Below, piece after piece: positions 170-48,940 of a stretch of DNA of 64,000 nucleotides (positions within the stretch are counted from its first letter, which is position 1; each line of letters starts with the position of its first letter). The notes beneath the pieces were generated by a model. That model was not told the DNA's origin, searched no databases, and saw nothing but the letters and a program-made list of their open reading frames with translations. The position numbers were made by a program, and so were the translations under genes. This DNA comes from Phaeosaccion multiseriatum. Lineage: Eukaryota; Protista; Ochrophyta, other classes. Location of the stretch: assembly GCA_965112735.1 (NCBI GenBank), contig OZ218951.1, positions 4,526,001 to 4,590,000 on the forward strand, read 5' to 3'.

Positions 170-1827
170 TTGCATGAGTGCCATTATCTCTGCCAACCTG
201 CCCCCTGCCGCACTCTCCCCGTCGTCGTCATTGTCGAAGAGCTGGATGCCCCGCTCGGGGTCGAAGCAGCGATAGGCCATGATGTTGTGAGTGGCTCGTG
301 AGACCTTGTTGTTTGTCAGGAGGGACTCCAGAGCGAGCTCGACCTGCATGGAAGGTGGGTGGGTGGGTGGGGGGGAGGGGGAAGTGGGGGGAGTGAAGGG
401 TGGGAAGGGAAAAGGGAAGGAGAGGGGAGAGGGGAAGGTGAAGTGGGGGGAGGGAGGGAGGGCAAGGGAAAGGGGAAGGAGAGGGGAGAGAGGAAGGTGA
501 AGTGGGGGGAGGGAGGGAGGGGAAGCGAAAGGGGAAGGATAGGGGAGAGGGGAAGGCGAAGTGGGGGGAGGGAGGGAGGGAGGAGTGGTTCAGAGTGCGA
601 GTGCGTAGCTTGTATGTACCGGTGTGTGTGAAATACACACAGAGAGAGAGGTAGATAGACAGATAGAGAGGCAGAGAGAGAGAGAGAGAGGGAAAGGTGG
701 CCGACGCTCACAAAGTCTGCAAGGGCGGAAGAGAGGGAGACCAGATAGAAAAACTCCCACGCACGCACGCACCCACCTGTCTCTCGTTGGTGACCGCAAC
801 GAGGTGGGCTTGAAAGGTGCTCTTGCGATCAGTGAAGGGCTTGCCGTGCTTGAACATTTCAATTGGAATCAAGTCATCGCTGCCATTTGCAAAGACTCCA
901 GTCCCATCAGCAGGCGACTGCTGCGGCTGCTGGTGCCACCCCAACGTTTGGTCCTTCTCGTCTGCCTCTCCCCTCCTGCTCCCCTCATCGCCCTCTCCCT
1001 GCGCTGCTGCATCGCTTCCGTTCTCTAGCTCTTGCTCCTCCTCCTGCTGCTGCTGCTGCTGCTGTTGAGGGTCTCCCTGTTCTTCATCTTCAGGCGGGGT
1101 ACATAAGCCCATCTCCAGCAGCTTTTCCCGCACCATCTCCACAACCACATAGATAACAACACTCCCCTTGTTTTCCTGGACCAGAGCTTCTACAGCTGTG
1201 TGTCGGGCCCGGCGGAGGCAGGGAGGGGGGGGGGGGGAGCGAGGAGCCCAGAGACGCAGAGGTAGACACACTTTTAAGTCAAGACGAAAGAGGAACACAC
1301 TCAACCAGACGACAGAGAGGAGTGGTAGGGGTTCATCATTCCTCCACCCTGCGCTAAGTCTCTCGCCTCTCTATCTCTGCCCCTGCATTTCGGTGGCCCA
1401 TTCTCTTCTTCCTCTGTCTCCATCACCTTGGTTGAGGATTGTGAGATTGCTTCGACTCACGGCTACGGAGCGCACCAGGCACTCTCTTGGACTCGAAGCG
1501 CTGGGGTAGTCCGGGCCCAAGCGTAGGCATATGCGCACGAGGGGAGAGGCAGCGTTAACGATCACCTCCACCTGAGGGTTGGAGTCGGAGAGAGCACAGA
1601 GGCAGGCTGCTTTTAGGGTAGAGGGACAGCTTTAATTTAATCTTCGTGGGTGCTTCCTGTTGGGAGAACGCTTCCACGCTGCACCTTCTCCCTACCTTAC
1701 GCTCTCCAGCCTCCCCTTCCTCCACGCTGGCGTCGTCTCCATAGATGTACTGCAGGGCCTCGATCTCTTCGAGCTGCTCCTCGTTCACCACGACGGCACC
1801 ATCTTCGCGACTTACTTCAGCGGCCAT
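170..1827 (-). CDS. IMPACT: IMPACT family protein (RWD + UPF0029/YigZ domain), multi-exon, 3' end probably left of the window
   Basis: ATG at 1827 (MAAEV..EEQLEEIEALQYIYG, RWD start). Exon ~1427-1570 has LGPDYPS (RWD YPxxxP-like), exon ~777-1190 has PFTDRKSTFQAH, exon 170-343 has ATHNIMAYR..DDDGESAAGGRL, with GT-AG boundaries. The expected VVVSRW..GG exon is not seen in the window. Confidence 0.88.
375..582. repeat. Intronic purine-rich degenerate tandem repeat (~60 bp unit)
   Basis: Recurring GGGGAGAGGGGAAGGTGAAGTGGGGGGAGGGAGGG-like blocks inside the IMPACT intron. Confidence 0.7.
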
Positions 1828-2429
1828 CCCATGCACTGCGGATGAGGGACGTCCAAGGGCTTCTCCAGGCGGCGAGCGAGCTGCTGGTGGCTCCAAGGGC
1901 GGCTTCCAGGATCCTTTATAGGAAAAAGGGGGAGAATGACGGAAATCCCATTGGTGATACAGGACGCCGCCAGTCTTTAGACTCCCTTCAGTCTTCAGGC
2001 CCTTCTTCAAAGAGCTGCTGGAGCAATCCTTACCCCCCGCCCATGCTTTTACATACCCCCCCCCCCCCGCGTTGACGGGACAGCAGTGAGCGGCTTCTGC
2101 ACAAGTCACGCTCCACACTTGCTCCACCGGAGGGAAAGAGACAGAGAGTTAAGGATGGATGCCTGGGTGCTGATGGAGGGGGTTGGAAGGCGGAAGGCCG
2201 GCGTTGGGTCGATGTAACGGGGGGGATTTACTTTGTGACATGTTGCGAGCGCAGGCAGGCCAGCGAAGCCCTCTTGGCCACAGCTGCAACGGTACCACGT
2301 CACTCTCACGAGATGGCAGCGCCGGCTGAAGCCAGTCAGGCAGAGCCGGCCGCCCTGGTGGGATGGAAGGGTAAGTGTCAGAGCCAGCAGCCGTGATATA
2401 CACACCCAGGGCCAGCCATCCCCGGCCTC

Positions 2430-3211
2430 ATGATTAGAACATCAGCCTGTGCCGCAGTCCTGACCCTTTCTTGTTGTGCCGCCGCCTTTCTCTACCCCTC
2501 CGCCTCTCGGCACCAGCGAAGCTCCAACCATGGGAGAATGCCTCGTCCTCCACGCAACCGTGGCAGATGTTGCCTTTTTGGGTCCCCACGACTACAACGC
2601 GCCAGCGGCGCGAAGCATAAGTGAGCAAGAAGATTGGAATTGATGGGCACCGGCTCTTCCATCTTTCGCGAACTACAAAACGCAGTGGATTTTCAACAGG
2701 ATGGCCGTGCAAGAATCACGGGAGCTGGTGAAGTTTAACTCCACGTGCAACGTCAGAACCGGGGACAGCGATGACATTCAATGGGAACGTTGCCGCCATT
2801 GCAATCGTAACGCAGTGCCTGCCTACAAGCGGACAATCATCACAACGGAGCCGGGGGTCCTTATGCTTACACTCAAGCGCTCCTCTTTTCATAAAAATAA
2901 ATGAAAAGAGGAGCGCTTGAGCGTAAGCATGAGGACCCCCGGTGCCGTTTCTATGAGTGTCCGCTTGTAGGCAGGCACTGCGTTACGATTGCATGGCGGC
3001 AACGTTCCCATTGAATGTCATCGCTGTCCTCACGTCAAGCAAGGTGAGGGTGAGCTGACGAAGGAGTGTGTTGCTCGCTTTTTTCTTAATGCGTCCGTCC
3101 CCCCTCTTCCTCTGTCGCCCGCCCACTCACCAGGTGACGAAGCCGGTCACTTTTCCCGAGACCCTTTTCCTTCCTGTGCAGACAGATCCGGCCGATGACT
3201 CCACCGAGGAG
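2430..3211 (+). pseudogene. Spliced fragment of a ubiquitin-specific protease (peptidase C19/USP), truncated by an inverted duplication
   Basis: ORF 2701-2904 RCRHCNRNAVPAYKRTIITTEPGVLMLTLKR fits the USP CxxC..AxK..I..PxVLx(H)LKRF box. After the hairpin, SSK|VTKPVTFPETL (intron ~3044-3133) fits the following K..VxFP.xL motif. Exon 2430-2620 (hydrophobic N-terminus) splices in frame to 2700. No Cys box or His box seen. Confidence 0.65.
2763..3029. repeat. Long inverted repeat / hairpin 1 (arms 2763-2892 and 2901-3029, 8 nt loop)
   Basis: GGACAGCGATGACATTC...CTCTTTTCAT-AAAAATAA-ATGAAAAGAG...GAATGTCATCGCTGTCC; about 130 bp arms with 8 substitutions and one 1-nt indel. Confidence 0.97.
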
Positions 3212-3491
3212 GTACGTGTGTGTGCGTGTGTGGGTGTGGGTGTGGTGGGTGTGGGGGGCGGCGGCCGTGTGTGTGTGCGCCGCTCTGCCTGAAGGCAACG
3301 AAGAACATAACGGCCCCGGACCCTCCCCCGTCTCCCTTTTTTCAAGATCTTTGCCTTCAGATACTGTAGCTCCTATCTGCTCCCTCTTTCTCACTACCGT
3401 CTCTCAGAAGGCTGGCTGGGAGCCTTGTGTCAAACTCCCCGTCCCTTCCTCTCGAACCTTACTCTGCCCACTCTTGCTGCCCTGCCTGCAG

Positions 3492-4187
3492 AGCCAGGGA
3501 GGTGCGACCGGCATGTCACCCGAGTCAAAGAAGCGCGACACTACATCGGGCAATTCCTTGCGCTGACTCTTTGATACGGCGATTCTCGGAGAAGTGGAGC
3601 TCCGCATGGGGTTGGTGTTCTTGCCGCGCTTGATGCGGAGCTCCACCTCTCCGAGAATTGCAGTATCAAAGAGGCAGCGCATGGGGGAGCTGCGGCAGAG
3701 CCTCAAGCAGGTGAGCTGCGAGTAGCTAGCTTCCTTGTCTGGCCTCTGTCTTCCTGTTCTCGTTGCTTGCTCTTGCTTCGCTCCTTCTTGCTTGTCTTGC
3801 TTAACTCCTCAGCTCGGCTCAGGCCAGCCATGCATGATCTCCTCCTGCCTCGCTCCTCCTCCACAAGCAACAACACCAACTGTCTGCCCCTGCCTGGCTG
3901 CTGTACCCAACACCACCCGCCGCCACCACCGCAGGCCAACGACAACGGCTTCGCCTGGGGATAGGCAACCACGCGCCCGACCGTACTTCTGGGGCAAGAC
4001 GAGAGCTACACCACCTCATCATGCTGCGTCCCTGCCTGCTCAGTCATCCTTCGCAACGTCGGCATCGTCAAAATCGTCCACTTGCACCGAGTGCGGCCGC
4101 GACCAGCACCGAGACGCCTCCGCTGCGAGAGCCATTTTAGTCTGCGCCCTGTACGAGCACAAAGAGTTTTTCGTTTTTCGACTGTAA
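3492..4187 (+). pseudogene. Degenerate Fanzor/TnpB-like RNA-guided nuclease, C-terminal half (RuvC-II region, zinc ribbon, RuvC-III), intron-containing
   Basis: Conceptual translation: RVKEARHYIGQFLALT/fs ~3569/FDTAILGE..MGELRQSLKQ | intron 3711-3934 | ANDNGFAWG*ATTRPTVLLGQDESYTTSSCCVPACSVILRNVG/fs 4064/SSKSSTCTECGRDQHRDASAARAIL. Motif order and spacing match H..A.FL..FD.I, ExYTS..C..C and CxxCG...(D/H)RDxNAAxNI. Two frameshifts and a TAG at 3962-3964; no RuvC-I (D-P-G) motif found. Confidence 0.78.
3559..3681. repeat. Inverted repeat / hairpin 2 (arms 3559-3607 and 3633-3681, 25 nt loop)
   Basis: TGCGCTGACTCTTTGATACGGCGATTCTCGGAGAAGTGGAGCTCCGCAT pairs with ATGCGGAGCTCCACCTCTCCGAGAATTGCAGTATCAAAGAGGCAGCGCA; 4 mismatches in 49 bp. 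Confidence 0.95.
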
Positions 4188-4255
4188 CTAACTCTCGAAA
4201 AACTCTTTGTGCTCGTAAAGAGCGCAGGCCAAAATGGTTCTCGCAGCGGAGGCGT
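4114..4255. repeat. Inverted repeat / hairpin 3 (arms 4114-4173 and 4196-4255, 22 nt loop) over the Fanzor-like 3' end
   Basis: ACGCCTCCGCTGCGAGAGCC...AAAGAGTTTTTCG pairs with CGAAAAACTCTTT...CTCGCAGCGGAGGCGT; 5 mismatches in 60 bp. Confidence 0.95.
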
Positions 4256-4359: not shown

Positions 4360-4837
4360 TACAAACGGAGGGAGGAAGGCATGCTTGGACGAGCCCCTCG
4401 ATGAGGCAGGAACTATTGCCCTGTACTCAGCTATGGAAAAGCAGAGGGGCGACATCATTACTCTTCTGCTGCAAGAGGGGGGATCGCCGAATACTCGACA
4501 CCCTTGGGGGGGCTGTACTCCGCTTGTGCTTGCATGCGCTCGTGGGAATGCGGCGATCGTACAACAGCTTCTCTCTGCTGGACCTACATCGGGGCGGCGC
4601 TGGAACTACTCGCAGGAGGATCCTCACTGGCGAAGGCTCTGACAGAAGCGCGAGAGCTCAACAATGCAGGAGCTTCAATTCCTTCTGGCCGCGGACAGGC
4701 AGCACTTTGCGTCACAAAGCGCGTTGGACGTGATGCGGGGCACTGACCGTCTCTTTGGCAAGGAAGGGAGGCTGAAGGTGTCGCAGAGAGAGGTCAGCCC
4801 TGAGGTGCTGCAGGACGTGGCGGAGGAGATGGCATGA
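4360..4837 (+). pseudogene. Ankyrin-repeat pseudogene, internally deleted paralogue of the gene at 47616-48940
   Basis: NGGRKACLDEPLDE..RGDIITLLLQEGGSPN..GCTPL, then a jump to SGAALELL..SLAKALT..HFASQSALDVMRGTDRLFGKEGRLKVSQREVSPEVLQDVAEEMA*. Nearly the same N- and C-terminal peptides as ORF 47616-48650; central repeats missing; frameshifts. Confidence 0.88.
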
Positions 4838-5701
4838 CGAGCTCACCTCCCCGCTCTGCAATCCGACGATGCAAGGGAGAGTAGTCAACCCCAAAAGTAG
4901 AGGCCAGATCGATCTCGATGGTATTATAAGGCTAAACTCCTCTCTCCTGATACATACACAGCTATACCTGAACTATCCATAAAAACACGTTTCTTGAGAG
5001 CACTTGGATCGGCGCGGGACCCGGCCCGCTCCGCCCCTCTCGCCAAAGCACCAAAGCAGCAAGGGGAGGAAAGGAGGGCAGTACGGCGCCTCCAAGAAGA
5101 AAAGAGAAAGAAACTGTCCGTCCTCCTTGCTAGAGAGAAAGAAACCGTCTGTCCTCCTTGCTTGCATGCCTGGCCCACGGAGCGCGAGCTCTCCTGTTTT
5201 TCTCTCTAGGCCTTTTCTTCCTTCCCTAATTTCTTTCATTCCTTTTCCCCTTCCTTCCTTCCTTCCTTCCGCTCTTCCCAACCAATAAATAATGCGCCGC
5301 CAGCCCCCCATCGCCGCGACATTATACAGTCAAATTCTTCGTGCGCGCATTCACCTGCCCACTCACCCACCCGCCTGTGCTGGCTGCCGGCAGTCGCATT
5401 CGGGTTGATTGCTGCCTCCGGATCCTGAGTGCTCACAGGTGCCTCTCACTCTCCATACATGCCAACCAGCAAGCCCCCCCCCCCCCAGCACCCTCTTCCG
5501 GGCCTTTTGGGGAACTTCTTGCTGTGTGCTGCCTTCTTTGCTTGACTCTTGTGCTTGACACTTGTGCTTCCCTGAAAGGGTTCATTGGGCCTCTCTGCCG
5601 TCTCCGCTCTGCCTTAAGTCAAAACCCCCACTAAGGACTGGTGGTGGTTCATAACAAGGACGGCAGCTGACTGGCATGTCGTGACGCTGGACTACTGAGA
5701 A

Positions 5702-6326: not shown

Positions 6327-9059
6327 CTAGAAGCGAACCTCTGTGGGGGAAGGGCCGGTATCGACGAGGGGCACATAGCTCACGCCAAGCAGCTTGGTGG
6401 CCTCGAAACTGTCAGAGGCAGGCCCTGTGTCGCGAACACGATCCACCTGAGGCAGTTGGAGGGAAGAAGGGAGGGAGGGGGGGAGGGAGGGTGTGTGAGT
6501 GCGTGTCTGCGTGCCTGCATGCGCGTGCGTGCGTGCGTGCGTGGAGATTTCAAGGGGGGGAACGTCCACAATTTCCCGTCCTCACTACTCATGCTGTCCC
6601 CCTTGGCGCTCTCTCCTCCTCTACCCCCCCTCCTTGTCCTTTCCTCGACAGTCCTCTCCGTTGGGGTGAGGGTACCTTATACAGTGTCTGTGGGCCGCCC
6701 TGAGGCCCAATCGGGATGAAGAGTCTCCCTCCCAATTTCAGCTGCTCCACCAATTTGATGGGCAGCTGAGGATAAAAAAGTCAGTAAAGGCGGAAAGAAA
6801 GAGAAAAAAGGAGAGAGAGATTGAGATTCTTCTAGCGAGGGAAGGACGAGGCAGTACCGCGTCGTTGTTTAGATACACAGGCTTCTCATCCGGGGAGTCC
6901 CTGCCTCCTCCTTGGTACGCATGGGGGGTTGGTGAGCGCATGCTTCACCCCCATTCTCACTCTCTTGTCCACTTACTTCTGCGGCGGCTGCTCCAACGTG
7001 GATGGCGTCGAAGGGACCCTCCTCCTGCACGCCAAAGCGGCGCATTCAAGAGTGCAGTAGCAGCAGCAGTGGGTTGGTGATACAGCCGCAGTAGCAGCAA
7101 CAGCAGCAGCAAGGGCAGCAATAGCAGCAGCGACAGCAGTTAGTCACACAGCAGCCATAGAGGAAAGTACGTCTAATGAGAGAGTCGGAGGCTGCTTCGA
7201 GCACCTCCACCGCGGAGAGACACACGCCCTCCAGCAATGGTACCTTCCCTCCCCCCCTCCCTCTCTCTCTTCCTCCCTCTCTTCCTCGGCCTCGGCCCAC
7301 CGGTCTGGCCCAGTTGTAGTATTTTCAGCTGGCCTCTCTTCGCTCTCTTCCCTCTCTCCCCCCCCACGCACCCACCTACCTTCCAGCCGTCCCACCCGTT
7401 GCCCACGGCGAGCTTGATCCTGCCCGTGGTAAGTAGAGAGGCGTCGTCGTTGCGAATGTTGCGCTCCGTCATGCCCACGAGCGGCCCCAGGTAGTCCACC
7501 CCGAACACTCTGGCAGTGGGGCAGTGGGGCAGTGGGGCGGGCATGTGGGTATGGGTGAGAGAGAGGTACGACAGGCATAGGCATACGGGCAGAGAAGCGC
7601 AGGTTACAGAGGGAGGGAGGGAGGGAGGGAGGGACGTAGGTGGGTAGATAAGTTGGTAGGTAGGTACGTAGACAGGTACGTAGACATGGAGGTATGTAGG
7701 TGGGTAGGTAGGTAGATAGGTGGGTACAGTGGCGTCCGATATTGTTGGCTGAAGTTTGGCGTTTGTGGTGCTGTTCTCTGTGCTGTTTTGTGTGGTGGTG
7801 GTGACTGATGGTGACTGAACAGCCTCGCCCCCAGCATGCCTCCAAATGTCCCTAGCCCCCCCCCCAAACTGCCCCCCCAAGTCGGCTCACCTCCCCCCCG
7901 GTCCCACGAGCCTGGCTAGTACCGCTGTGAGGTACCCGCTGCCGCACCCAACATCGAGCACTTTTGCATCCGTCTTGCCTGAAGGGAGAGGGAGGGAGGG
8001 AGGGGGAGGGAGGTAGGCGGCTCAAAATCTCTCTCTCTTTCATTTTTCCTGATTCCCGCCCCTCCTTCCTTCCCTCCCTCCCTCCCTCCCTCCCTCCCTC
8101 CTTCCCTCCCTCCAACTCCCTGCCTCCCATCCCCTTGCCCCCTTCCCCCTCTCTCTCGTTCCGGTCGAACCTTCGAGTGCGGGCCACATGATCTCGATAG
8201 CGTGAGCGTGCATGTGTGGGGCGCTGTTGGATAAGAGGGAGGGAGGGAGTCGGTGAGGCAAACGACGAAAACAAAGGGGAGGGGGACGGGGACGGGGAGG
8301 GGCAAGCTGCTGTCATGGCGCGTCGCAATGAGCTAAAATCTAGGCTGTGGACGGTTGGAAGGCCACAATCTCCACGGCACACGGGCCATGATTGCTACAC
8401 ATGATACCTACATACAGAGGGCGATCACACCCCCTCCTGCCAAGCACACCCTTCAGCGACTCTGGCTGAAGTCCCACCGCTTTAACGTGGCGGGCTCTAA
8501 TGCTTCTCTCGTCTCTACACTTGCCGCCTCTGTACCACCGAGCACTACACCCAAGAGAGAGGCCGCCTCTGCTACCGAGCCTACTTTGACTTTGCTCATT
8601 CCACCGCACAGAGACGGGGAGGGAGGCCATTCTCCTCTTCCCTGTTCTTCACCTGATGGTCTGACGATGGCCAATGGGCTGCGATGGGAGGATGTGTCAT
8701 GCGAACAACCCAAAGACAGGAACAGGAGAACAGGGCAAGTTGCTTGTTACGACGGAGGATGGCAGCCTACAGGAGGCCTTGATACGCCCCTCCCGTTCCA
8801 CTCCCCCTCCTCCTCCCCTCCTCTTCCTCTCCTCCCTCTCCCCCCTTATCCTCCTCCCCTCCCCTCCCCTCCCTCCTGTTCCTCTCGTCCCTCTCCTCCT
8901 CCCCTCCCCTCCCTGCCCCACCTGAGGGGCGTCGCTGTAGGCGTTGGAGGGTGCGTAGAAGCCCCTGTCCGTGTCCAGCATGGCCTTGCGGCACGCCTCA
9001 TGCTCCAAGAGATTGCTGTCTGCTCCACACCAAGCAGCACCAACACACCAACACACACC

Positions 9060-21247: not shown

Positions 21248-23164
21248 CTACACCGTGATGGCCCCTCCCTCCGACTCCGAAAAGACGACCGACATGGCCT
21301 CTCCGAATACCCAAGCGAGCGACAGCCCAAGCACAGTCAAGAAGCACGCACCCCCCAGTCTCGAGGTCTGCTTCTCCACCTTGAGATGCTCCTGATCCGC
21401 CTGTGTGGCGGGGAGAAGCCCGAGGAGCACCAGCGGCAAGGGTGCGACCACCGAAGTCAGCACTGTAAGCTTCCAAATGCCGGTAAAGTCTCCTGCCTCG
21501 ATGGCCTGGTTGCTCACGTCCCACAGGCTGGCCATCAGCGTGCCGAGAGAGCCCGCACAGACGAGGGCGATGTTGCCAAAGGTGGTGAGCATGGAGTACG
21601 TGGCGCCCTCACTGCCCCCCGGACAAAGGTGCATGTACATGATGCACACAGGGAGGAACTGAATGCCCTGGACGTACTCTGAAATCACGTCGTCGCCAAG
21701 GGCAAACCAAAAGTCCGGCACGTGGAAGAACCACCACGTGTGGTTGAGGCGGAACACAAGCACGAGCTGAAGTAGGGAGAAGAGGGTGGTGATGATGACC
21801 GACCACGCGTAGACGAGGCGCCAGCTCACATGGAACAGGTACCGCTTGTACGCGAGCACGCCTAGCATGGTGGTGATCGCCCCCGCCGTCGCCATAAAGC
21901 CCAATTGGTAGGCCTGGAAGTGTAACCCGAGCTGTAAGAAGGACCCCCAGGCCGCGTTGGGGATTTGAAAAAGATTGAAGAGGTAGATGAAGGTCATGGG
22001 TTTCCACACGGCCTTGAGCTGGATGGTCGTCCACACATCCTGACACTGCTGCTGCACGCTCTTGCGGTCCACGCCTCGCTCCTCGTACAGAAACCAAGCA
22101 GCGGGGGCGAGCAATAGCAAGGGTACCATGGCATTCAGCGCGCAGACTTGATCAAAGTCCAAACCCCAGCCCCAGCTTCGTCGGTTGTAGAGCAAGGCGC
22201 CACCCAGACAGCCCACCACCGAACCCGCGAAGCGAATGGCGTAGCAGGTGCCTTGCAGCTGCCCATCAGATTGGGCGTCGCTGAGGTTGGTGCTCGTCTT
22301 GTTCATGTTGCGGCTGCCGCTGCTGTTCAACGGGGAGGCCTCTCCCCCCCGCAGCGGGTCTGATCGAGTACTCGGAGACGACGGGGAGCATGTTGAAGCC
22401 ACTTCGCTGCTCTCTTCTCCCGTGCCCGTTCCACTCTCCAAGCTGCTGCCGAGCTCGGTTGATGCGGATGTGTTGCTAAGCCGCTCGGCCTCCTCCGCCG
22501 CCGCATACTCGAGCAGCTTCCGGTTCACAGCACTCCTCTCCACCACAAGAGTGTCACTCATCACGTCCCCCATGATCTGCCCCAGTGTAGCTGTAAAGAG
22601 CAGGACGGCGAGGGAGGTGCGAGTGATGAGCCCGAGGTGAGCCAGTCCGCCCAACGCGAGATAGCACACCACATGCAGACCGAACCCCACCACCAGATAG
22701 GGCTTTCGACGCAGCCCCGCGATGGGGAAAATGTCACTGATAAAGCCGTGAACGAGCTTGAAGGACCAGGGGATGCTCATGAGTACGTAGATGGTGTTTT
22801 GCTCCCCTGGTTGCAGGTTCAGTGTGTTGACCATGAAGACATTGAGGGGGGTCCGCACGAAGCTGGCCAGGAACCCCACGCAGAAGTAGGATATGGGGAT
22901 GGCGAGGTGGTCCAGGTGCGTCAGCACGATGGGCCCTCGCTCCAACAGACTCCCCCCCACGTCATCCTCCTCCTGCTCCTTCGGCAAAAGCTGCCCGTTC
23001 TCCACTTCCCATCGCTGGTTCTTGTCTCCTCTGCCATCATCGCCTCCCTCGCTGACCCCTCCATATTTCGCGCTCGAGTACCCGGCGCGGCTCCTACTGC
23101 TTTGCGAGCTACCACGAGTGGAGCTCAGGAGAGTAGACGCCTCGCTCCGTTCACCATTGACCAT
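21248..23164 (-). CDS. Folate-biopterin transporter (BT1/FBT family, MFS), intronless, 638 aa
   Basis: IPWSFKLVHGFISDIFPIAGLRRKPY, DVMSDTLVVE, LCPGGSEGATYSMLTTFGN motifs and about 12 hydrophobic segments. Confidence 0.92.
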   Translation of the reverse strand: MVNGERSEASTLLSSTRGSSQSSRSRAGYSSAKYGGVSEGGDDGRGDKNQRWEVENGQLLPKEQEEDDVGGSLLERGPIVLTHLDHLAIPISYFCVGFLASFVRTPLNVFMVNTLNLQPGEQNTIYVLMSIPWSFKLVHGFISDIFPIAGLRRKPYLVVGFGLHVVCYLALGGLAHLGLITRTSLAVLLFTATLGQIMGDVMSDTLVVERSAVNRKLLEYAAAEEAERLSNTSASTELGSSLESGTGTGEESSEVASTCSPSSPSTRSDPLRGGEASPLNSSGSRNMNKTSTNLSDAQSDGQLQGTCYAIRFAGSVVGCLGGALLYNRRSWGWGLDFDQVCALNAMVPLLLLAPAAWFLYEERGVDRKSVQQQCQDVWTTIQLKAVWKPMTFIYLFNLFQIPNAAWGSFLQLGLHFQAYQLGFMATAGAITTMLGVLAYKRYLFHVSWRLVYAWSVIITTLFSLLQLVLVFRLNHTWWFFHVPDFWFALGDDVISEYVQGIQFLPVCIMYMHLCPGGSEGATYSMLTTFGNIALVCAGSLGTLMASLWDVSNQAIEAGDFTGIWKLTVLTSVVAPLPLVLLGLLPATQADQEHLKVEKQTSRLGGACFLTVLGLSLAWVFGEAMSVVFSESEGGAITV

Positions 23165-23413: not shown

Positions 23414-26400
23414 ATGTGGGTTCTGCCAAGTCGGGGGCAGAAGAGGAAGCTGCCTACGAAGCAGGATGAGAAGCAGGGCGAGCCAAAAGGGAAGAAGAAG
23501 GAGCAGCAGCCGCAGAGGCAGCAGCCGTCGCAGCAACAGCGGCAGAGGAAGAGAAAGGATGGTGTTTCGGGTGAGGCGGGCGAAGGGGACGGCCCGGACC
23601 TCTTCTCGGCACCACGGAGAAAGAAGAAGAAGACGCGGCCGCCAAAGAAGAGAGACGGAGACCACCAGCGACAGCAGGGACAGCAGCAATGGCAGCAGCA
23701 GACGGGGCAGCGGCAGCTGACGGAGGAGGAGACGAAGCGGCGAGTGGCCTTGAACAACGACATTGCCGCGCACGGTAAGCGCAAGGACCTGGCCGCGGCA
23801 ACGAGCTGCTTCGAGGAGGCACTGCAGGCCGGCTTGGCCAACGATTTCACCTACACCATCATGATGAACGCGTACATTCGCTGTGGGAGCGTGAAAGAGG
23901 CGGAGGCGCTTCTACCGCAGATGCGAAACGCGGGCTTCCGCCCTGGAGTCGTAGCGTACACCTCCCTCGTCAATGGCGTGTGTAGGCAGGGCAGGCTTGC
24001 CGAGGCGTGGGCCCTCCTCGATCAGATGGATGGGACGGGGGTGGGGAAAGCGGCTTGCAGCCCCAACATTCGCACGGCCAACACCTTCCTCAGGGGTTGT
24101 CTGCTCAATGGAGACTTGCGGAGAGCGGAGCAGTGCTGGCAGAAAATGAAGGACACGTGGCATGTAAGGTACCTGCGGTGGCGCCTCTACGTTACCCAAT
24201 ACATGTGTATATGTACATACGTGTGTGTGTGTCTGTGTGTGTGTGTGTCTTTTGTCTCACTCCGCCTGTGCGTGTTGTGTTCGTGTGTTTGTGTGTGGGC
24301 GCACTCAAGACGCTCACTCACTCAACTCAAAATACTCACAACATTCACTCACTCCCTCTCCCCTCACTCACTCACTCACTCACTCACGCACTCACACAGG
24401 TGGAAGGCGATGCCTCTTCCTTCGAAATGATGGTGGGGATGCGCAGTCAGGGCCTCCGAGTGAAGGAGGCAGGGCAACTCCTGGCCAAGCTGCAGCAGCA
24501 GTCCTTTGCAGAGGCATCCTCAGTGGCAGCAGGGGCAATCAACATGGCCCGGGCGGCAGCGTTGATGGGCATGTGGACTCGGTGCGAAGACGGTCTGGCG
24601 CTTGCCACTCAGTCCTTGAAAGAGGGAGAGGTCAGGTCACCATCAGGAGCACTCACAAATGGCAACGGGGGTGGTGGTGGTGGTGATGGTGGGGACCACA
24701 GTATCAGCGCTAATAGTAGTAATCGTGGTGGCGGGGTGGGAGGAGGCAAGCGCGGGTGGAAAGAGACGGCAGCAAGGGCGGAGTCAGCGAGCCTGTTCCG
24801 CTCGCATCGCTCGGGGCATCTATTGAGGGAGGTCGAGTTCATTCGTGCCTTTGCACGCCGGAGAAAGGGCAAGGCCCTTGACCTAAGCAAGAGCTTTAGG
24901 AGAGTGCTTTCCTTTACGACAGAGGAGGAGGAGGCGGCGGGGCACTGCAGTGAAGAGAGCGTCGCGACCGGACAGGGCAAAGGCAAGGGCAAGGACAAGG
25001 GCAAGGGCAAGGGTAAGGGTGGAAACGGGGGTGGTGGGGTTGGCGATGCGGCTGTATCACCAACTGCTGCTACGGCTGGGCAAGGGCAAGGGCAAGCGCA
25101 AGGAGGCGTTGTGGAGAAGCTGTATGGGGCTCTGCAGTGTAGCTTCGGTCTATCTGCCACTCCCGCCTCCGTCCAGCTCGCCGTCAGAGACGCCTTGAAG
25201 AGAACATTCAGCAGCCACACCAGTCGGAAGGAGGAAGAGGAGGAGGAGGAGGAGGGCAGGGGCAGCGAAGAGCGTATTTGCTTTTCCAGTCTGTTTGATG
25301 AGGAGCAGCCCGTGGGTGGAAAGAGTAGCAGCAGCAGTGGTGGTGGTGGTTACCGCCAGCCTGTGAAGATGGAGATTTGCTCCGGTGCAGGGGAGTGGGT
25401 AGTGGCCCAGGCCCAAGCTGACATGGGAACGGCGAAGTGGTGCGCTCTGGAGATCCGCCACGATCGCTGCTACCAAGGTACGCACGCACTCACGCGCGCA
25501 CTCACGCTCTCAATGTCACTTTCGCGGTATTACATTCCTTCCTTGTCGCTGCTCCCTCAACGCATTGTTCACATGTGCAGAGAGGGGGGGGTGCTCATAT
25601 CTAACAAGGATCTGGGAAGGATGTTCTTCCCCTAACCCAAACAGCCCCCGCCCGCCCCTCCCTCCCTTGCCCTCCTAGCCCTTCTGTTGTTCCTCCAGCG
25701 CCTTACTCCTCCTCCTCTCTCTCTCTTGCTCCTCTTCTCCTCCTCTCTCTCTCTCTTGCTCCTCTTCTCCTCCTTCTCTCTCTTGCTCCACTCCACAGCT
25801 TGGAGCCGGGCCGTGATGAGTGAGCTTGACAACTTGGCCGTGTTTGCGGGCAACGCCTCCATAGTCCTCGACAAGTACACCGGGGTAGGGTACGGGGTGG
25901 GGGGTAGGGGGAAGGTGGAGGCGTCATCTCACGTCTCACGTCACTTACTCCCTACCTCATCTTCACTGTCACTACTGCTCCTGCTGCTCCTGCTGCTGCT
26001 CGTGCTGCTGCTGCTGCTGCTGCTGCTCTCCCCTCCTGCTGTTTCCAGGCCGGCACAGTGGACTGCGTGTTCATCAACCACCCCGAGCCTCCGCAGCAAG
26101 CCAACGACGCCCTCTCGTTCCAAGGGGACCATCTGCTCACAGGTACGTACGCACACTACTTGCATCACTCACTACTTACAGCATTCACACACAAAGAGAG
26201 AGAGAGGGAGAGGGAGAGAGATACAGTCTCGTGCGCCCTTTTGTCTGTGAAGGCCCCAACCTCCCTTTGCTCTCTCTCTCTGTTGTCCTTCCCGCGTTGT
26301 TGGCTTGTTGAGTAAGAAACTAATTTCGCACACGGATTCCCCACGCAAACACATGCCCCATGCGCACACGCACACACACGTACACACACACGCACGCTTA

Positions 26401-30473: not shown

Positions 30474-32816
30474 ATGAGAGCAGTATCGTTGAGGGGGATG
30501 ACCAGAGCCTTCTTCTCCGCTTGCATTGGCAGGAACGGAAGAGGACCCGCAACAAGAAGAGGCGCCGCGGCTGAACGGCGTGCCGACTCTACTCTCCATC
30601 AGAAGAAGCAGCTGCCGCAGCAATGGTCTTGCTACTCTACTGGGGGGAGTGAGAAGTCGAGGCAGATACGGCTCATGAGGGAGATTCAAGATCTGGGGAG
30701 GAGCAGGGATTGGAAGAGGGTGGCACCTACGCTGGAGCGCGCACGGCAAGAGGGCCTCAAGCCCAATGTGTACTGTATGAGTGCTGCTATTACAGCGATT
30801 GGGAAGTGCGGGCGGTGGAAGGGTGCCTTGGCGCTCTTGGCAGAGATGAGGAAGGAAGGCGTCAGGCCAAACGTGTTCAGCTACAGCGCCGCCATTAACG
30901 CATGCGCCAATGCCAGCCAATATGTGGAGGCAATGGGTTTACTGAGGGAGATGAAGGCAGAAGGACTCGCTCCGAATGAAATCAGCTACAGTACCACCAT
31001 TAACGCATGCGCCAGGGCCAGCCAACATGTGGAGGCAATGCGTTTACTGAGGGAGATGAAGGCAGAAGGACTCACTCCGGATAAAAACAGCTACCACGCC
31101 ACCATCAACGCATGCGCCAGGGCCAGGGAACATGCGAAGGCAATGGGTTTACTGAGGGAGATGAAGGCACAAGGACTCGCTCCGGATGTAATCAGCTACA
31201 ATTTGACCATTAATGCATGTGCCAGAGCCAACCAACACGTCGAGGCAATGGGTTTACTGAGGGAGATACAGGAACAAGGACTCGCTCCGGATGTAGTCAG
31301 CTACAACGCCACCATTAACGCATTCGCCAGGTCCAGCGAACATGTGGAGGCAATGAGTTTACTGAGGGAGATGAAAGCGGAAGGACTCACTCCGGATCAA
31401 ATCAGCTACAGCGCCACCATTAATGCATGCGCCAGAGCCAACCAAGACGTGGAGGCACTTGGTTTACTGAGGGAGATGAAGGCACAAGGACTCGCCCCGG
31501 ATGAAATCAGCTACAGCGCCACCATTAATGCATGCGCCAGAGCCAACCAACACGTGGAGGCAATGGGTTTACTGAGGGAGATGAAGGCACAAGGACTCGC
31601 CCCGGATCAAATCAGCTACAATGCCAGCATTAACGCATGCGCCAGAGCCAACCAACATGTGGAGGCAATGGGTTTACTGAGGGAGATGAAGGTGCAGGGA
31701 CTCGCTCCGGATGAAATCAGCTACAATGCCACCATTAACGCATGCGCCAGGGCGAGCGAATGTGTGGAAGCACTGGGTTTACTGAGGGAGATGAAGGCAC
31801 AAGGACTCGCTCCGAATGCAATCAGCTACAATGCCACCATTAACGCATGCGCCAGGGCCAGCGAATATGTGGAGGCAATGAGTTTACTGAGGGAGATGAA
31901 GGCACAAGGACTCGCTCCGGATGAAATCAGCTACAGTGCCACCATTAACGCATGCGCCAGGGGCGGCCAACATGTGCAGGCACTGGGTTTACTGAGGGAG
32001 ATGAAGGCACAAGGACTCGCTCCGGATGAAATCAGCTACAGCGCCAGCATTAACGCATGCGCCAGAGCCAACCAACACGTGGAGGCACTGGATTTACTGA
32101 GGGAGATGAAGGCACAAGGACTCGCTCCGGATGAAATCAGCTACAGTGCCACCATTAATGCATGCGCCAGGGGCGGCCAACACGTGCAGGCACTGGATTT
32201 ACTGAGGGAGATGAAGGCGGAAGGACTCACTCCGGATGGAATCAACTACAATGCCACCATTAATGCATGCGCCAGAGCCAACCAACACGTGCAGGCACTG
32301 GGTTTACTGAGGGAGATGAAGGCGGAAGGACGCGCTCCGGAAGAAATCAGCTACAACACCACCATTAATGCATGCGCCAGGAGCGGCGAACACGTGCAGG
32401 CACTGGGTTTACTGAGGGAGATGAAGGCGGAAGGAGTTGCTCCGAATGAGATCAGCTACAGTTCCACCATTGATGCTCTGCAGGACGGTGGCAATGAGGA
32501 GGCTGCGGACGAGCTGTACGCAGAGGCCCTATCGCAAGGGATCTTCAGACCTTGGAAGAAAGGGGGGCAGGAGGTGGACTTGCACGACTTCAGCAGGGGA
32601 ACGAGCAAGGCAGCGCTTCGTCACGTGCTCTCAGTGGAGAAGGTGAAGGGTGAGATCCATGTCATCACCGGCCGAGGCCGAGGCAGTGAGGACGGCGTCA
32701 GCGTTCTCAAGCCCGCGGTGCTCGCCTACTTGCAGGAGAGGCCGGGCGTCGAAGTATGGGAAGACGAACACAACCCGGGGAGGGTGGTGATGCGGGTCGG
32801 TGGAGGAGGGCAGTAA
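30474..32816 (+). CDS. PPR-SMR protein: 16-17 P-type PPR repeats plus C-terminal Smr domain, intronless, organelle-targeting-like N-terminus
   Basis: 35-aa repeats (EISYSATINACARANQHVEAMGLLREMKAQGLAPD); Smr motifs VDLHDF, VITGRGRGS, LKPAV, NPGRV; Arg/Ala/Ser-rich N-terminus. Confidence 0.95.
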   Translation: MRAVSLRGMTRAFFSACIGRNGRGPATRRGAAAERRADSTLHQKKQLPQQWSCYSTGGSEKSRQIRLMREIQDLGRSRDWKRVAPTLERARQEGLKPNVYCMSAAITAIGKCGRWKGALALLAEMRKEGVRPNVFSYSAAINACANASQYVEAMGLLREMKAEGLAPNEISYSTTINACARASQHVEAMRLLREMKAEGLTPDKNSYHATINACARAREHAKAMGLLREMKAQGLAPDVISYNLTINACARANQHVEAMGLLREIQEQGLAPDVVSYNATINAFARSSEHVEAMSLLREMKAEGLTPDQISYSATINACARANQDVEALGLLREMKAQGLAPDEISYSATINACARANQHVEAMGLLREMKAQGLAPDQISYNASINACARANQHVEAMGLLREMKVQGLAPDEISYNATINACARASECVEALGLLREMKAQGLAPNAISYNATINACARASEYVEAMSLLREMKAQGLAPDEISYSATINACARGGQHVQALGLLREMKAQGLAPDEISYSASINACARANQHVEALDLLREMKAQGLAPDEISYSATINACARGGQHVQALDLLREMKAEGLTPDGINYNATINACARANQHVQALGLLREMKAEGRAPEEISYNTTINACARSGEHVQALGLLREMKAEGVAPNEISYSSTIDALQDGGNEEAADELYAEALSQGIFRPWKKGGQEVDLHDFSRGTSKAALRHVLSVEKVKGEIHVITGRGRGSEDGVSVLKPAVLAYLQERPGVEVWEDEHNPGRVVMRVGGGGQ
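30870..32475 (+). repeat. 105 bp coding tandem repeat array (about 15 near-identical units)
   Basis: TTTACTGAGGGAGATGAAGGC and ATTAA(C/T)GCATGCGCCAG recur every 105 nt. Confidence 0.95.
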
Positions 32817-39442: not shown

Positions 39443-42400
39443 ATGGCTGCGGAAGCCGTTCGACCTTCTCTGACTCTAGCGGAGGAAGATGCTGGCGGGG
39501 AAGGTGATGCAAGAGGGCAAGAGGCACAAGGACTGCCGCCACCCCTTCCAGAAGGGCATCAGACACCACATCAGCATCCCGCTCCCGGAATAGCCACACC
39601 GAGGGTTGTCGTGGCGGCACAGCCAAGAGGTAAGTATTGTTTCCCCCCTCCCCCTCCTCTCTCTATTCATCCGCTCCCGTCTCTCCCTCGCCCTCGATCC
39701 ATACCATTGTCCCTCTCCTGAGCCGTAAAATGGATGTGCTGTGCGTCCCTGTTTTCACCCGCCAGACGGAGCGAGTAATATGGTTCAACAGCAGCAGCAG
39801 CAGCAGCAGCAGCCCCCTCCACCTTCTTTACCGCAACAGCTGCAAGAGATTCGTGCAATGCATCACGCCCAACAGAGGGCAAACGTGCAACAACGGCAGC
39901 TTCAGCAAGCACAAGCGCTGCCGTTGTCTTCGGGCCAACAGCGCGAGCTTATTGAGGGGAGGATGAGGCTGCAACAACAGCACGCAGAGCTTCGTCTACG
40001 GGACCTGCGGAGGCAGGAACTGGAGCAGCAGCAGGGAGGTGCAGGCAGAGGTGATGGCAGCGTGTCCTCTGGTGAGACTCCTCAACCAAGCCCTCCAAAT
40101 CCTCCCGTGGCCCAGCCGAATGAGCAGCAGCCACCGGTGCAGCAGGTCCAGCAGAGGCGAGTCAACATCACCCTCCCTCCCGGGCAGAACTTCCATGTGC
40201 GTATCACCCCACGAGGTACGCCCACTGCAGCTCCAGCTGTTGGTGATGCAGCAGCAGCAGGAGGAGAAGGAGGAGGAGGGGGAGGAGGAAGAGTATCGGG
40301 ATCAGGAGCCGTAGAGGGTCAACCAGCGCTGATGCCGACGCCAACAGCAGGAACAGGATCGGCCGCAGCAGCAGGAGAAGGAGGAGGTGGAGACGGGGGA
40401 GGCGGAAGAGGAGGAGTAAGAAGGAGGGGGGAGGGAAGCGGTAGCAGCAGCGGAAGGGGCTGGCGAGCAGGTAGGAATTCAAGTATCTGAGCGTACCAGG
40501 CTGTGTTGCTAGCATGAAGAGAAGGGAGGCAGGGAAGGAAGGAGTGGATGTGTAACTCTGCCTTGTGAGGGAGGAAGGGAAGGCAAGGGAAGGAAGGCAT
40601 GTGCCTGTGTCTTTGCCTCCTTTCAGTGGTTCATTCATCCACTCATTCATCGTTTCATCCATCCATCATTCATCCAGCCATCCACGTGAACAGCAGGTCA
40701 TCCGCCCACTCACCTCATTCACACGCATCCTTGCATCCATCGAACGCACCCACGCACGCACGCACCGCAGGCTTCTTCAACAGTGAGAGGCCCCGGGGCG
40801 GCGCAGCAGCTAATCTCACTACCAGCAGTGGAAGTGGGGCAACTGCATCGGGCGTGGGAGGGGCAGAGGTAGCGTTACCAGCGGGAGCAGCAGTTGGTGA
40901 TACAGCAGCAGAAAGGCGAGAAGCACAACAAGGACGGCAAGGGCAAAGGCATGGGCAGGAGGAGACTAAGAAGGAGGAGGACGTGGAGGATGAAGAGGAA
41001 GACACATACCCGGAGGAGTGGACCTGCCCAGTGTGCTTTAACCTCTTCGACGTCCCCATGCACCCCCCCTGCCAACACGCCGTGTGTAATTCCTGCCTAA
41101 CCGAGATCACCAACGGGGCGCTTCGCCAACCCTCTCGCTACGTGATGGATCCCCCTACAGCCCGCTTGACATTGCAGCCCCCGCCGCCCCCGACTTGCCC
41201 TATCTGCCGGACTCCATTCCGACCCGTCGACGTCCAGCGAGGACCTGCGGCGCTGCTGGCAAGCATGCAGGCGGGGAGGGTACGGTGCCAGAACAGCAAC
41301 AGGTCTAGCCCAAGGGGCTGGGGAAGGGTGGGAGAAGGAGGGAGGGCGTCGTCGTCGAATGTCTCAAGTGCTGTCGCCCCCGCCTCGGGCAGCAGCAGTA
41401 GTAGCAGCAGCAGTAGTAGTAGTAGCAGCAGCAGCAGTGGTGGCGGGAATGGCCAGAATGGCAGCAGCAGCCGACGGCGATCCTTGGGGTGTGGTGCCGA
41501 GTTCAGTCCGTTGCTGTGGAAGCAACATCAGCTTGTGTGTCCTCTTGCCATTACGTCCTGCCCCCGCTCGGATATGGGGTGTACACACACGGGTAGGCGA
41601 GACGGCATGAGCAGGCACTTGTCTGTGTGCCCTTACGAGAGGGTGAAGGGACTGCAACCCAGACTGGTGGGTAAAATGGACAAGCTTGGCGAAACAGTCA
41701 AGGTGAGGATGGATGGATGGTAGGAGGAGGAGGAGGATTTGATGTCGTGTGGTTGATGAATTGAGTGATTTGGATGGATGGTAGGAGGAGGAGGAGGATT
41801 TGATGTCGTGTGGTTGATCTGAGGGGATGGCATGGAGTATTGCGGCATTAAGGAGGAGTGCTCGTGGCAGGTGGCAGTGGTGTTGCCCGTTATTTAAAGC
41901 CCTTGCTCTACGGGCTGCTTTTTCTTCCCACCGCGCCTCCCTCCACACTCTCTCTCTCTCTCTCACCGTGCAGTCATATTTTCTCTCTCTGGCTGCCTCA
42001 TCTCTGTTCCCTCCCTCCCCCCCCACCCTCTCTCTGTGTGTGCCTCAACCGGCAAATTCACCCACTCCTCCCCATTCCTCTCTCTCTCACACACACACAC
42101 CCCGCATCCCCCCCAACACACGCACGCACACACACACCAACTACACTGCACTTGACTGGACCGGTCCCGTATATGCCTTTGTTGTGTGGGGTGTTGCGCA
42201 GGTGCTGGAGAACCACATTGTGCAGCAGAACGCGCAAATCACCTCGCTCTTCCAACATATTGCAAACATGCAATTCCGCTACGACACCGCGAATGCATGG
42301 CACTTTGTGGTCATTGCCGTGCGCATCTTATGGCAGCCCAGCGAGTGGGGCGCGCACTTTAGAGAGAAGCTCTCTCGATACAACCTCGTTGCTGCTATAA

Positions 42401-44261
42401 GCATATGGTACATCCTCCCCTTCGTCCTGGGCGCAGGGGTGTGGTTCGCCCGGGCACTTGTGTCCTCCTGGGCGTTTTGGGAGCATGGGAGCGGGAGCTG
42501 GAGCAGCGGTGGGAGCCGTGGAGGTGGTGGAAGTGGGAGCGTTGTCGAGGTAGGGGGAGGAGGGGGTTGGGGAGAGTGGGAGGCCTTTCTGGCGCAGTTT
42601 CTGCAGCTGGGGGATGGACTGGCGCGGCAGGGCTGGGGGGGAATACTTTGGGGGTCCAGTGACGGTTATGGTGACGCCCAAGGATGGGAGGAGGGGGAGT
42701 GTCGAGTTGTGGGCGGCGGCGACGCTGGAGGAGGAGGGAGGGGGGTGGAGCAGTGCGGTGATGTAGTGGCCGCTCTCGTCTCGTTTTTGGGGCTACGCAG
42801 CGGGATGGTTGCCAATGGTACGTGCACACACACGCATACATACACGCACATACACACACGCACAAATACTCTCACACACGAGCGTGCACACACGCGCACA
42901 CACAACACAAACCAGCACTCACTCGCACCCACACGCACCCACACACGCGCACACACATACGCACACCCCGATGGTACCCAAACGAATGAGTCCCCCCCCC
43001 CCCCAGCCCACATACCCGTCCGTCTTCCTGATTTTTGGTCTCCGTCTCTTCTCTCCTCCTCCTCAATTAACAAACACCTTCCTTTCTCCCCTTTTCCTTC
43101 GGTGTATTCTGCTTGCCTATGCACCTACCTATCTACCCACCTACCTTCCCACCTACCTACTTATCTGCCTACCTTCCTTCCTACCTACCTACCTACCTAC
43201 CTACCTACCTACCTACCTACCTACCTACCTGCCTACCTACCTACGTATCTACCCCCCTTCCCACCTCCCTACTTACCTACCTACCTACCCACCTACCCAC
43301 CTACCCACGTACCCACCTACCTACGTATCTACCCACCTTCCTACCTACCTACGTACCTACCCACCTGCCTACTTACCTACGTACCTACCCACCCTACCTA
43401 CCCACCTACCCACCTACCTATCTACATCCTTCTCTCCCTTGCCTACCTACCTACCTACCCACCTACCTACCTACCTATCTACTTTTCTACCTACCTACCT
43501 ACCTACCTACCTACCTACCTACCTACCTACCTATCTACCTATCTACCTACCTACGCAACTGCCTACCTGGCTACGAAGGGCTGCTGAAGGCGTCGGCGCT
43601 AGCATTGCACAACATCTTCGCCTTCCCGACGTGGCTTGTAAGCTGGGTATTCGACTTGGCGACAGAAGCAGGACCAGGGGCAGGGGCAGGGACAGGGACA
43701 GAGACGATGGTGCTTTTTGCTCCTTATCGCTCACTCCCCCTCATCGGGCTGCTCCTGGTGGGGCTGCTGTCCGCCCTTGTGCTCAACAAGCTGTGGGGCT
43801 GGGAGGCAGGCAATTTGTCAAAGTGGGAGTCACGGCTCGGTTTGGCGGGTGAGTTGATTGGTTCAGGGAAGGAAGGAGGAAGGGAGGGAGGGAGGGAGCG
43901 GGTGGGTTTGGTTTGGTTTGGTTTGGTTTGGTTTGGCTTTTCAAGATGGCACTCTACTCTTTGTCGTTCTTATGGTAGCCATCGGCTGGTTGTTCGACTT
44001 GCGCTCAACCACTTACTCACCACCACACTGCCATACGCTGCTGCGGTCCTCCACCCCTGTACCCTTCTTCGTGTGGCGCATGCAGGGGGGAGGCGCTCGG
44101 TGGTTCCCTTCTCCTTGCCCTTCCCCTTGCCCTCGTTTGGCGACGCCGTGGCGACGTTCTTCATCGCAGCGGTGACCCACACGCTGGATCGAGCGGAGCT
44201 GGGAGGAGTGGCTCCGGTGGCTGTGCAGGTGAGTGAGGTGGAGCTGTCGATCGGAGGGAGC

Positions 44262-47039: not shown

Positions 47040-47190
47040 CCAGGGCTCCTCCAGGGCAGGAAGCAATGCCTCATTGATGGGCTCGTCCAAACATGCCTTC
47101 CTCCCCCCCGTTCATTGCGACGAGCGCCCTCACAGCACCTCGCATCTGCGTCACGCTCTGACCACCTCTGATGGCTTCATCCATCAAGAC
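47040..47190 (-). pseudogene. Short N-terminal remnant of the same ankyrin gene family
   Basis: Minus strand reads LMDEAIRGGQSVTQMRGAVRALVAMNGG/fs/RKACLDEPINEALLPAL, versus LVQAIANGESAQRVQAAVRGVVAKNGGRKACLDEPLDETGLPAL in the intact gene. Confidence 0.75.
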
Positions 47191-47615: not shown

Positions 47616-48940
47616 TCATGCCATCTCCTCCGCCACCTCCTGCAGCACCTCAGGGCTAAGCTCTCTCTGCGACACCTTCAGCCTTCCTTCCTTGCCAAAG
47701 AGACGGTCAGTGCCCCGCATCAGGTCCAACGCGCTTTGTGACGCGAAGTGATGCCTGTTCGCGGCCAGAAGGAGCTCTACAATACGGGCTTCATCGATAC
47801 ACCCTCGTGCCTGAGTCAGGGCCTTTGCCAGTGAGGCCCCTCCTGAGAGCAGCTCCAGCGCCGCCCCGCTGTGGCCCTGACTTGCCGCGATAGCCAAAGG
47901 CGTTGCAACAGCGTGTTTGCCCCCATTGTCAGGATCAGCCCCCACAGACAGCAGCACATGGATCACTGCCTCACGGCCCGCCTTAGCAGCCATGAGCAAA
48001 GCTGTGTACCCCTGAGAACACTGAATCTCCACATCGGCACCTCCTGAGACGAGTTCCTCCACGACACGAGCATAACCACAGTGAGATGCCAAGTGTATCG
48101 CTCCAGCCCCGGTACCACTGATCGCATTCACCTCTGCACCAGCCGTGAGCAGCTTTCGCAAAACACTTCGGTGTCCATTGGCAGACGCAAACATCAACGC
48201 AGTACTGCTCCTCTCAGTGCTACGCCTCTCGAGGTCAGCGCCGGCTGTGATGAGCTGATCCACCACAATGCCATGCCCTTTCTGGCTTGCCGCGCAAAGC
48301 GGGGACCATCCGCTGTGGACTCCCAAATTCACATCTGCCCCGGAGGTAAGCAGCAGCTGTGTGACCCTGTGACGTCCGTATCTTGCGGCAATGCACAAGG
48401 GGGTGCAGCCATTTGACGGGTTCAGAATATTCGGCGACGCCCCCTCTTGCAGCAAAAGAGCAATGATATCACCCCTCCCCTCTTCCACGGCTACGTGCAG
48501 GGCAGGAAGCCCTGTCTCATCGAGAGGCTCGTCCAAGCATGCCTTTCTCCCGCCGTTCTTAGCGACGACGCCCCTCACAGCCGCTTGCACCCTTTGGGCG
48601 CTCTCACCATTGGCGATGGCTTGAACCAGGCGGTTAGCCTGCAATAGCAAGAGGAGAGGGAGGGAGGGAGGGAGGGAGGGAGGGAGGGAGGGAGGGAGGG
48701 AGGGAGGGAGGGAGGGAGGGAGGGAGGGAGGGAGGGAGGGAGGGAGGGAGGGAGGGAGGGAGGGAGGGAGGGAGGGAGGGAGGGAGGGAGGGAGGGAGGG
48801 AGGGAGGGAGGGAGGGAAGAGAGGGGGTGAGGGAGGGAGACGTCGAGGAAAGGACAGGCGAAGGACTCCGTGTATGAACCCACCTCGCTACTGAAGGTCC
48901 TCTGCATGCTAAAGAAAGAGGTCGAGGAGGAGGAGCTCAT
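47616..48940 (-). CDS. Ankyrin-repeat protein (about 7 repeats), two exons
   Basis: Repeated G.TPL..AA..GH..V...LL..GAD motifs in ORF 47616-48650; short first exon MSSSSSTSFFSMQRTFSSE|GT upstream of a (GGGA)n intron. Confidence 0.92.
48655..48817. repeat. (GGGA)n microsatellite in the ankyrin gene intron
   Basis: Read directly. Confidence 0.97.

Follow-up and report, generated by a model that had tools for sequence, protein, structure and literature searches.

When double-strand breaks are repaired, snap-back or templated 'filler' insertions typically comprise a few to tens of nucleotides (nt), and internally deleted transposon derivatives arise by abortive gap repair. Template-switch mutations (TSMs) make whole hairpins in one step and seed new microRNA (miRNA) genes, as described by Loytynoja & Goldman 2017 (PMC5453318), Monttinen & Loytynoja 2022 (PMC8794818) and Monttinen et al. 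2023 (PMC10710096). The origin of young MIRNA genes from an inverted duplication of the target gene goes back to Allen et al. 2004, as cited in PMC4513859. Here we analyse a 64,000-nt stretch of the genome of the ochrophyte alga Phaeosaccion multiseriatum (contig OZ218951.1, positions 4,526,001 to 4,590,000; in the following 'the window'), in which three hairpins, H1, H2 and H3, are embedded in a dead, broken and shrunken copy of a USP-Fanzor family gene. Each of the three is composed of a sense coding piece, a short loop and then an antisense copy of the same piece. We consider it probable that these hairpins are scars of template switching or fold-back repair and not a built device. Their parts, as defined by arm-vs-arm alignment, are:

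2763-2892 (+) and 2901-3029 (+): H1, left and right arm, 130-nt arms with 8 substitutions, 8-nt loop
2901-3029 (+): H1 right arm, antisense, the inserted inverted copy, 1 nt short opposite 2799
2893-2900: H1 loop, AAAAATAA, A+T-rich, with the closing pairs CAT/ATG at its flanks
3556-3607 (+) and 3633-3684 (+): H2, left and right arm, 52-nt arms with 5 substitutions, 25-nt loop
3556-3607 (+): H2 left arm, reads LFDTAILGEVELR, with an in-frame TGA at 3564-3566
3633-3684 (+): H2 right arm, with Cys in the antisense reading at the position of the left arm's stop
3608-3632: H2 loop, 25 nt, open in both directions (MGLVFLPRL on the plus strand, IKRGKNTNP on the minus strand)
4114-4173 (+) and 4196-4255 (+): H3, left and right arm, 60-nt arms with 5 substitutions, 22-nt loop
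4114-4173 (+): H3 left arm, sense, encodes DASAARAILVCALYEHKEFF
4174-4195: H3 loop, 22 nt, its first letters repeat the arm end in tandem (TTTTTCG)

With filler synthesis and abortive gap repair the gene copy that carries the hairpins (the relic) shares the shrunken state of the element, the presence at discrete points of short stretches that copy neighbouring sequence in inverted orientation, and perhaps priming on 2-3 self-complementary nucleotides. In contrast, its arms are longer than typical filler, and H1 is not located at a deletion junction. The likeness to TSMs lies in the inverted copy of adjacent sequence beside its template, the short spacer and the instantly near-perfect stem, whereas the stems of the relic extend over 52-130 base pairs (bp) instead of the roughly 35 bp of the miRNA-type stems in primates, and three of them are found together in 1.5 kb.

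Two systems in which inverted repeats are linked to small RNAs have also to be considered. Like the hairpin RNAs (hpRNAs) of the Nmy/Tmy type from Drosophila simulans (PMC10292708, PMC10317233), the hairpins of the relic are inverted repeats made from gene sequence, homologous to a selfish or multicopy gene family. The Drosophila hpRNAs, however, have proven transcripts, Dicer-dependent small interfering RNAs (siRNAs) and derepressed targets, and hpRNA arms are typically much longer than those found here. The inverted-repeat loci of Phytophthora, where they are the strongest sources of 21-nt RNAs per Mbp (PMC3804510), belong to the stramenopile lineage as well, although Phytophthora is an oomycete and not a photosynthetic ochrophyte.

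A compact cluster of fold-backs

A preceding sequence-only reading had placed three inverted repeats within 2763-4255, and the arm alignments locate them at exactly these positions. The arm lengths given for H1 (130 nt) and H3 (60 nt) and the loop range of 8-25 nt agree with our measurements, whereas the 49 nt given for H2 have to be corrected to 52 nt. When searched with BLAST against the 64-kb window each arm finds its own partner only, and thus H1, H2 and H3 are mutually unrelated, as had been proposed. The same search, which had been suggested as a way to find intact targets, recovered the partners, but no intact target copy and no further copy of the USP-Fanzor sequence in the 64 kb.

The claim that no comparable hairpin exists elsewhere in the window also holds. 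A dedicated scan for stems of at least 18 bp, with loops of 3-40 nt and perfect pairing over the 8 closing pairs, found H1, H2 and H3 and no other hairpin, so that all three fall within 1.5 kb and the remaining 62.5 kb are free of such stems, and a repeat search in the rest of the 64 kb gave only low-complexity trinucleotide pairs of the (GCT)n/(GGA)n type. RNA folding, proposed as a check, yielded long near-perfect stems with energies of -252.5 (H1), -104.3 (H2) and -104.4 kcal/mol (H3), corresponding to z-scores of -32, -14 and -16, respectively, relative to dinucleotide shuffles.

Apart from these hairpins, the window contains a low-complexity fold-back at 7975-8110, in which (GGGAGG)n faces (CCCTCC)n. 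This region collects dozens of sub-threshold matches to Rfam miRNA models on both strands, and such matches are generic to any hairpin.

The coding sequence around the hairpins

Every left arm follows, in sense, the reading frame of a plus-strand coding remnant, and every right arm is the reverse complement of its partner. The left arm of H1 is in frame with a USP-like exon starting at 2700 and covers the stretch from C..C to LKRSSF, and the left arm of H3 corresponds to the stretch after CTECGRDQHRD, from DASAARAIL onwards. The two recognisable parts of the relic are:

2700-3210 (+): USP/UCH-like pseudogene piece, with an exon 2700-3043 (H1 inside), an intron 3044-3133 and an exon from 3134 to about 3210
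3935-4187 (+): TnpB/Fanzor C-terminal piece, with a zinc ribbon and a RuvC-III-like HRD..AA..IL

Searched alone against Pfam, the uninterrupted pieces are too short: the USP piece gives no match and the TNB piece reaches only E=0.011. We also searched read-throughs in which the breaks or the antisense arm had been replaced by X. With this, the H3 piece (DESYTT..CC..C / X / ..CTECGRDQHRDASAARAIL..) matches Cas12f1-like_TNB (PF07282) with E=2.3e-6 and 28.1 bits, above the cut-off of 26.3, and the H1 piece matches UCH with E=1e-4 and 22.4 bits, just short of the cut-off of 23.9 and over profile positions 133-181 only. The UCH alignment crosses the masked site where the antisense arm of H1 had been cut out. 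Thus, H1 amounts in essence to 138 inserted nt, the loop and the antisense arm, within an otherwise continuous exon, i.e. the event was a near-pure insertion. The TNB piece also gives weak alignments to Cas12m/TranC in the PDB, over the C..C..HRD..AA..I motif, and matches 'transposase' families of the TnpB type in PHROGs. The H2 piece has no match in Pfam, the PDB or PHROGs, and its 'RuvC-II' label, which was assigned only by its position between the other two pieces, is unverified. Neither the catalytic boxes of USP (Cys, His) are present in the relic, nor was a RuvC-I motif found in the Fanzor-like remnant.

The USP and Fanzor origin claimed by the sequence-only reading is therefore borne out to different degrees, as the TNB cut-off is passed for H3, the UCH cut-off is narrowly missed for H1 and the label of H2 stands without any match. 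This analysis demonstrates the coding origin of H1 and H3 and supports the view that the hairpins arose when USP-like and TnpB/Fanzor-like coding sequence was duplicated in inverted orientation.

The gene copy itself is dead. It carries stop codons at 3564-3566 (TGA) and 3962-3964 (TAG) and a frameshift between 3998 (DESYT) and 4083 (CTECG), recognisable coding sequence amounts to about 270 codons, and most of the gene is missing through large deletions. As had been noted from the sequence, splice-like signals are found on the plus strand at 2621/2699, 3044/3133 and 3711/3934, with GTGAG donors and CAG acceptors; their retention at three intron-like gaps argues for a copy made at the DNA level rather than a retrocopy. 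Twin-priming of the L1 type or a retrocopy origin was considered and rejected, as both flanks of every hairpin are sense and the intron-like segments are retained.

Relatives of this sequence could not be recovered. A homologous-protein search with the USP piece found none, a search of 1.84 billion representative sequences gave 0 matches, viral contigs contained no family copies by protein or by degenerate DNA pattern, and two metagenome scans returned neither family copies nor an orthologous locus.

Proposed readings: repair scars, a silencing locus and others

In each hairpin the antisense copy stands directly 3' of its own sense template, separated by a loop of 8-25 nt, which is the product expected from a template switch within a fork or from snap-back synthesis. 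We propose that a gene copy of the USP-Fanzor family was under replication or repair when the growing strand detached from its template and found a priming site on the complementary strand, a few bases off. It would then have written 52-130 nt backwards and returned to the original template, and the outcome would be a sense piece, a short loop and an antisense copy at three places. Two variants would fit, i.e. the 3' end may have snapped back on itself, or it may have jumped forward to the opposite template at the fork. The stems are closed by self-complementary pairs, CAT/ATG in H1 and H2 and CG in H3. Together with the TTTTTCG repeat in the loop of H3 these are compatible with priming on 2-3 nt, although they do not prove it. 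We also considered the collapse of a large palindrome of two head-to-head copies. This would put the antisense pieces in reverse order, whereas sense and antisense pieces alternate in gene order, and the model was rejected.

The arms differ at 8/129 (H1), 5/52 (H2) and 5/60 (H3) positions, a homogeneous divergence (p=0.70). The crowding of the events into 1.5 kb, with 62.5 kb free of them, and this homogeneity both fit one event or one burst, and the three fold-backs probably result from a single multi-switch accident or a short burst, which may have belonged to the repair episode in which the element was shrunk. We infer the template-switch mechanism, the timing as a single event and the lack of function alike. 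If the locus were transcribed, the stems would be long enough for dicing, but in a scar this would be incidental.

The type of the differences is in part what would be seen if both arms decayed alike. All but one of the 18 differences exchange G/C and A/T, with the A/T allele in the left arm in 9 cases and in the right arm in 8, and 10/18 substitutions are transitions. Disabling changes are found in arms of both types, namely the 1-nt deletion in the right arm of H1 and the stop in the left arm of H2. Five mismatches can still pair as G:U on a plus-strand transcript, five on a minus-strand transcript and eight on neither; the sample is small, and five against five gives no indication that base pairing has been maintained on one of the two transcripts. 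Between the H1 arms at 2836-2850 and 2943-2957, six differences fall within 15 nt (TIITTE in the sense arm, TLIETA in the antisense-read arm), with hardly any differences in the flanking 73 nt and 21 nt, and this patch looks like one multi-nucleotide or conversion event, not six point mutations.

Several points weigh against simple scars. Of the 17 G/C versus A/T differences 10 are synonymous, as compared to 5.6 expected (p=0.02 under a null with GC->AT changes only, p=0.002-0.01 under simpler nulls). In H1 all eight substitutions lie opposite 2836-2871, i.e. in 36 of 130 nt (clustering p=4e-4), and in H3 all five lie opposite 4131-4151, i.e. in 21 of 60 nt (p=0.04), resulting in a combined p=6e-4 for the clustering. 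Next to the loop, pairing is perfect over at least 14 bp in all three stems (p=0.019). The arm differences are thus unlike plain neutral decay, and an extra process is needed, e.g. gene conversion from live paralogs or the use of a different template copy. Furthermore, arms of 52-130 nt exceed the miRNA-type stems of roughly 35 bp in the template-switch study (PMC10710096). No outgroup or paralog sequence by which the changes could be polarised was found in our searches, and an ancestral state without hairpins and a common date of the three events are presumed. Finally, the absence of function is assumed for a type of locus that in Phytophthora is the most potent source of small RNAs per Mbp (PMC3804510).

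As to the nature of the extra process, the pattern gives a hint that short tracts may have been imported from protein-coding family members, either by ectopic gene conversion or because another copy served as template, with a possible contribution of homogenisation close to the loop; the pattern could also be a fluke of the small sample. CpG decay was rejected as cause of the third-position bias, since only 2-3/18 sites are CpG by eye. The GC content at third codon positions of the H2 loop was tried as a guide to the native strand and is uninformative, as the third codon positions coincide in both readings.

These features would be accommodated if other family copies contributed to the arms, either because the antisense arms were templated on members still functional at that time, during a patchwork repair that alternated between copies, or because one arm was later overwritten in short tracts by ectopic gene conversion from live paralogs. 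We regard this as unlikely on the whole. It would account for the synonymous excess (10/17 vs 5.6 expected), for the location of 11/18 differences at codon position 3 and for the tracts of 21-36 nt with perfect flanks, and the neighbouring ankyrin piece (see below) is likewise a patchwork-like copy of a paralog. Yet, the counts are small and the test is post hoc, 73 nt of H1 lack any synonymous difference, which is odd for two diverged paralogs, and disabling changes are present on both arms. Moreover, ordinary homology-guided invasion cannot make an inverted copy, so that a strand switch is still required. The sequence-only reading had favoured a silencing locus, in the form of a polycistronic Dicer substrate with antisense memory of Fanzor elements, and to this we assign a somewhat smaller likelihood still. 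The relic would be transcribed on the plus strand, possibly with a promoter that also serves the IMPACT-like gene, the stems would be diced, and the resulting endogenous siRNAs would silence live USP-Fanzor elements. Such a role would be in line with the long near-perfect stems (folding z of -14 to -32), with a single selfish-element family behind all three of them, with the retained splice motifs and with the perfect apex pairing over at least 14 bp in every stem, and stems of 52-130 bp could give several siRNA duplexes. [quoted passage not shown] On the other hand, G:U-compatible mismatches have no strand bias (5 on plus, 5 on minus, 8 on neither), the sense copy is a pseudogene within a run of pseudogene pieces, and Rfam gives only generic matches below threshold. 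PMC4513859 also compares the pre-miRNAs of Ectocarpus with two possible sources, protein-coding genes and transposons, a comparison that we count on this side. Among the Rfam 15 miRNA families the best match has 47.7 bits as compared to a gathering threshold of 77, and all are generic hairpin matches; as any hairpin attracts them, matches to miRNA models were discarded as evidence. On balance, a defence function is less likely than scars.

A further reading is quite improbable. A genome-wide process might build hairpin clusters in dead copies of genes or mobile elements, the antisense arms of which live family members would template or refresh, and might thereby provide a heritable 'memory' for RNA interference (RNAi) against RNA-guided selfish elements, by analogy to piRNA clusters or the hpRNA suppressors of Drosophila. 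The synonymous-biased, tract-like arm differences would be compatible with it. That the hairpins are an artefact of assembly or amplification, i.e. that fold-back chimeric reads or chimeras from multiple displacement amplification entered the consensus, is very improbable. Fold-back chimeras are a known class of artefacts, but chimeras made in vitro would have identical arms, whereas the arms differ here by 18 substitutions and one indel (6-10%), and the three hairpins are small and separate within otherwise collinear sequence. Hardly any weight, finally, is left for native structures of the element, such as the scaffold of a guide (omega) RNA or hairpins recognised by a transposase. H3 is located at the 3' end of the Fanzor-like frame, near the 3' edge of the relic, and this is the position where the omega RNAs of TnpB/Fanzor systems are encoded (PMC10432273). 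However, each stem duplicates protein-coding sequence and breaks the reading frame, the three stems have no sequence in common, and H1 lies inside the USP part.

Genomic surroundings and implications

The relic is bordered by a minus-strand IMPACT-like gene on one side and by an ankyrin pseudogene on the other:

1555-2127 (-): RWD-domain exon of the IMPACT-like gene, divergent neighbour (RWD E=4.2e-5)
4364-4840 (+): ankyrin pseudogene, internally deleted, truncated and frameshifted, a copy of the intact open reading frame (ORF) 47616-48650 (-)

The divergent orientation relative to IMPACT, as described before, is borne out by the RWD exon; a homologous-protein search with this exon found none. 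The intact ankyrin ORF encodes 344 amino acids (aa; Pfam Ank_2 E=2e-45) and has no USP/Fanzor sequence beside it. Thus, the 3' edge of the USP/Fanzor relic must lie between 4255 and 4364, near H3. A third ankyrin fragment of 42 nt is located at 47067-47108 (-), and all three copies start at the same ..GGRKACLDEP.. point. Both longer copies are preceded by a tract of the (CCCT)n type, which is long at 48660-48815. The ankyrin copies suggest a repeatedly copied exon.

The remainder of the window contains several large ORFs. ORF 21251-23164 (-) encodes a BT1 folate/biopterin transporter of 638 aa, the best public relatives of which reach an identity of only about 60% (Ectocarpus, Ascophyllum, Tribonema and Chrysoparadoxa). 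By these relatives the genome falls among PX-clade-like ochrophytes, and the protein collection searched does not contain it. ORF 30474-32813 (+) encodes a PPR protein of 780 aa that carries an Smr domain at its C-terminus (PPR_2 E=7e-145; Smr E=1.3e-4), and ORF 40599-41720 (+) combines a RING finger with a zinc finger of the TRAF/Sina type (Pfam E=1e-6 to 1e-7). Grouped with the latter are large ORFs without a Pfam match, at 41827-43584, 24007-25632 and 58083-60422.

If the hairpins of the relic are indeed scars, they are one clear case in which DNA synthesis switched strands in series, in an algal lineage that has received little study, and a fold-back mutational process of this kind delivers finished hairpins as starting material for the evolution of small-RNA genes. 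Were it true, instead, that the hairpins are expressed and diced, they would represent the first host RNAi locus aimed at an RNA-guided element of the Fanzor type.

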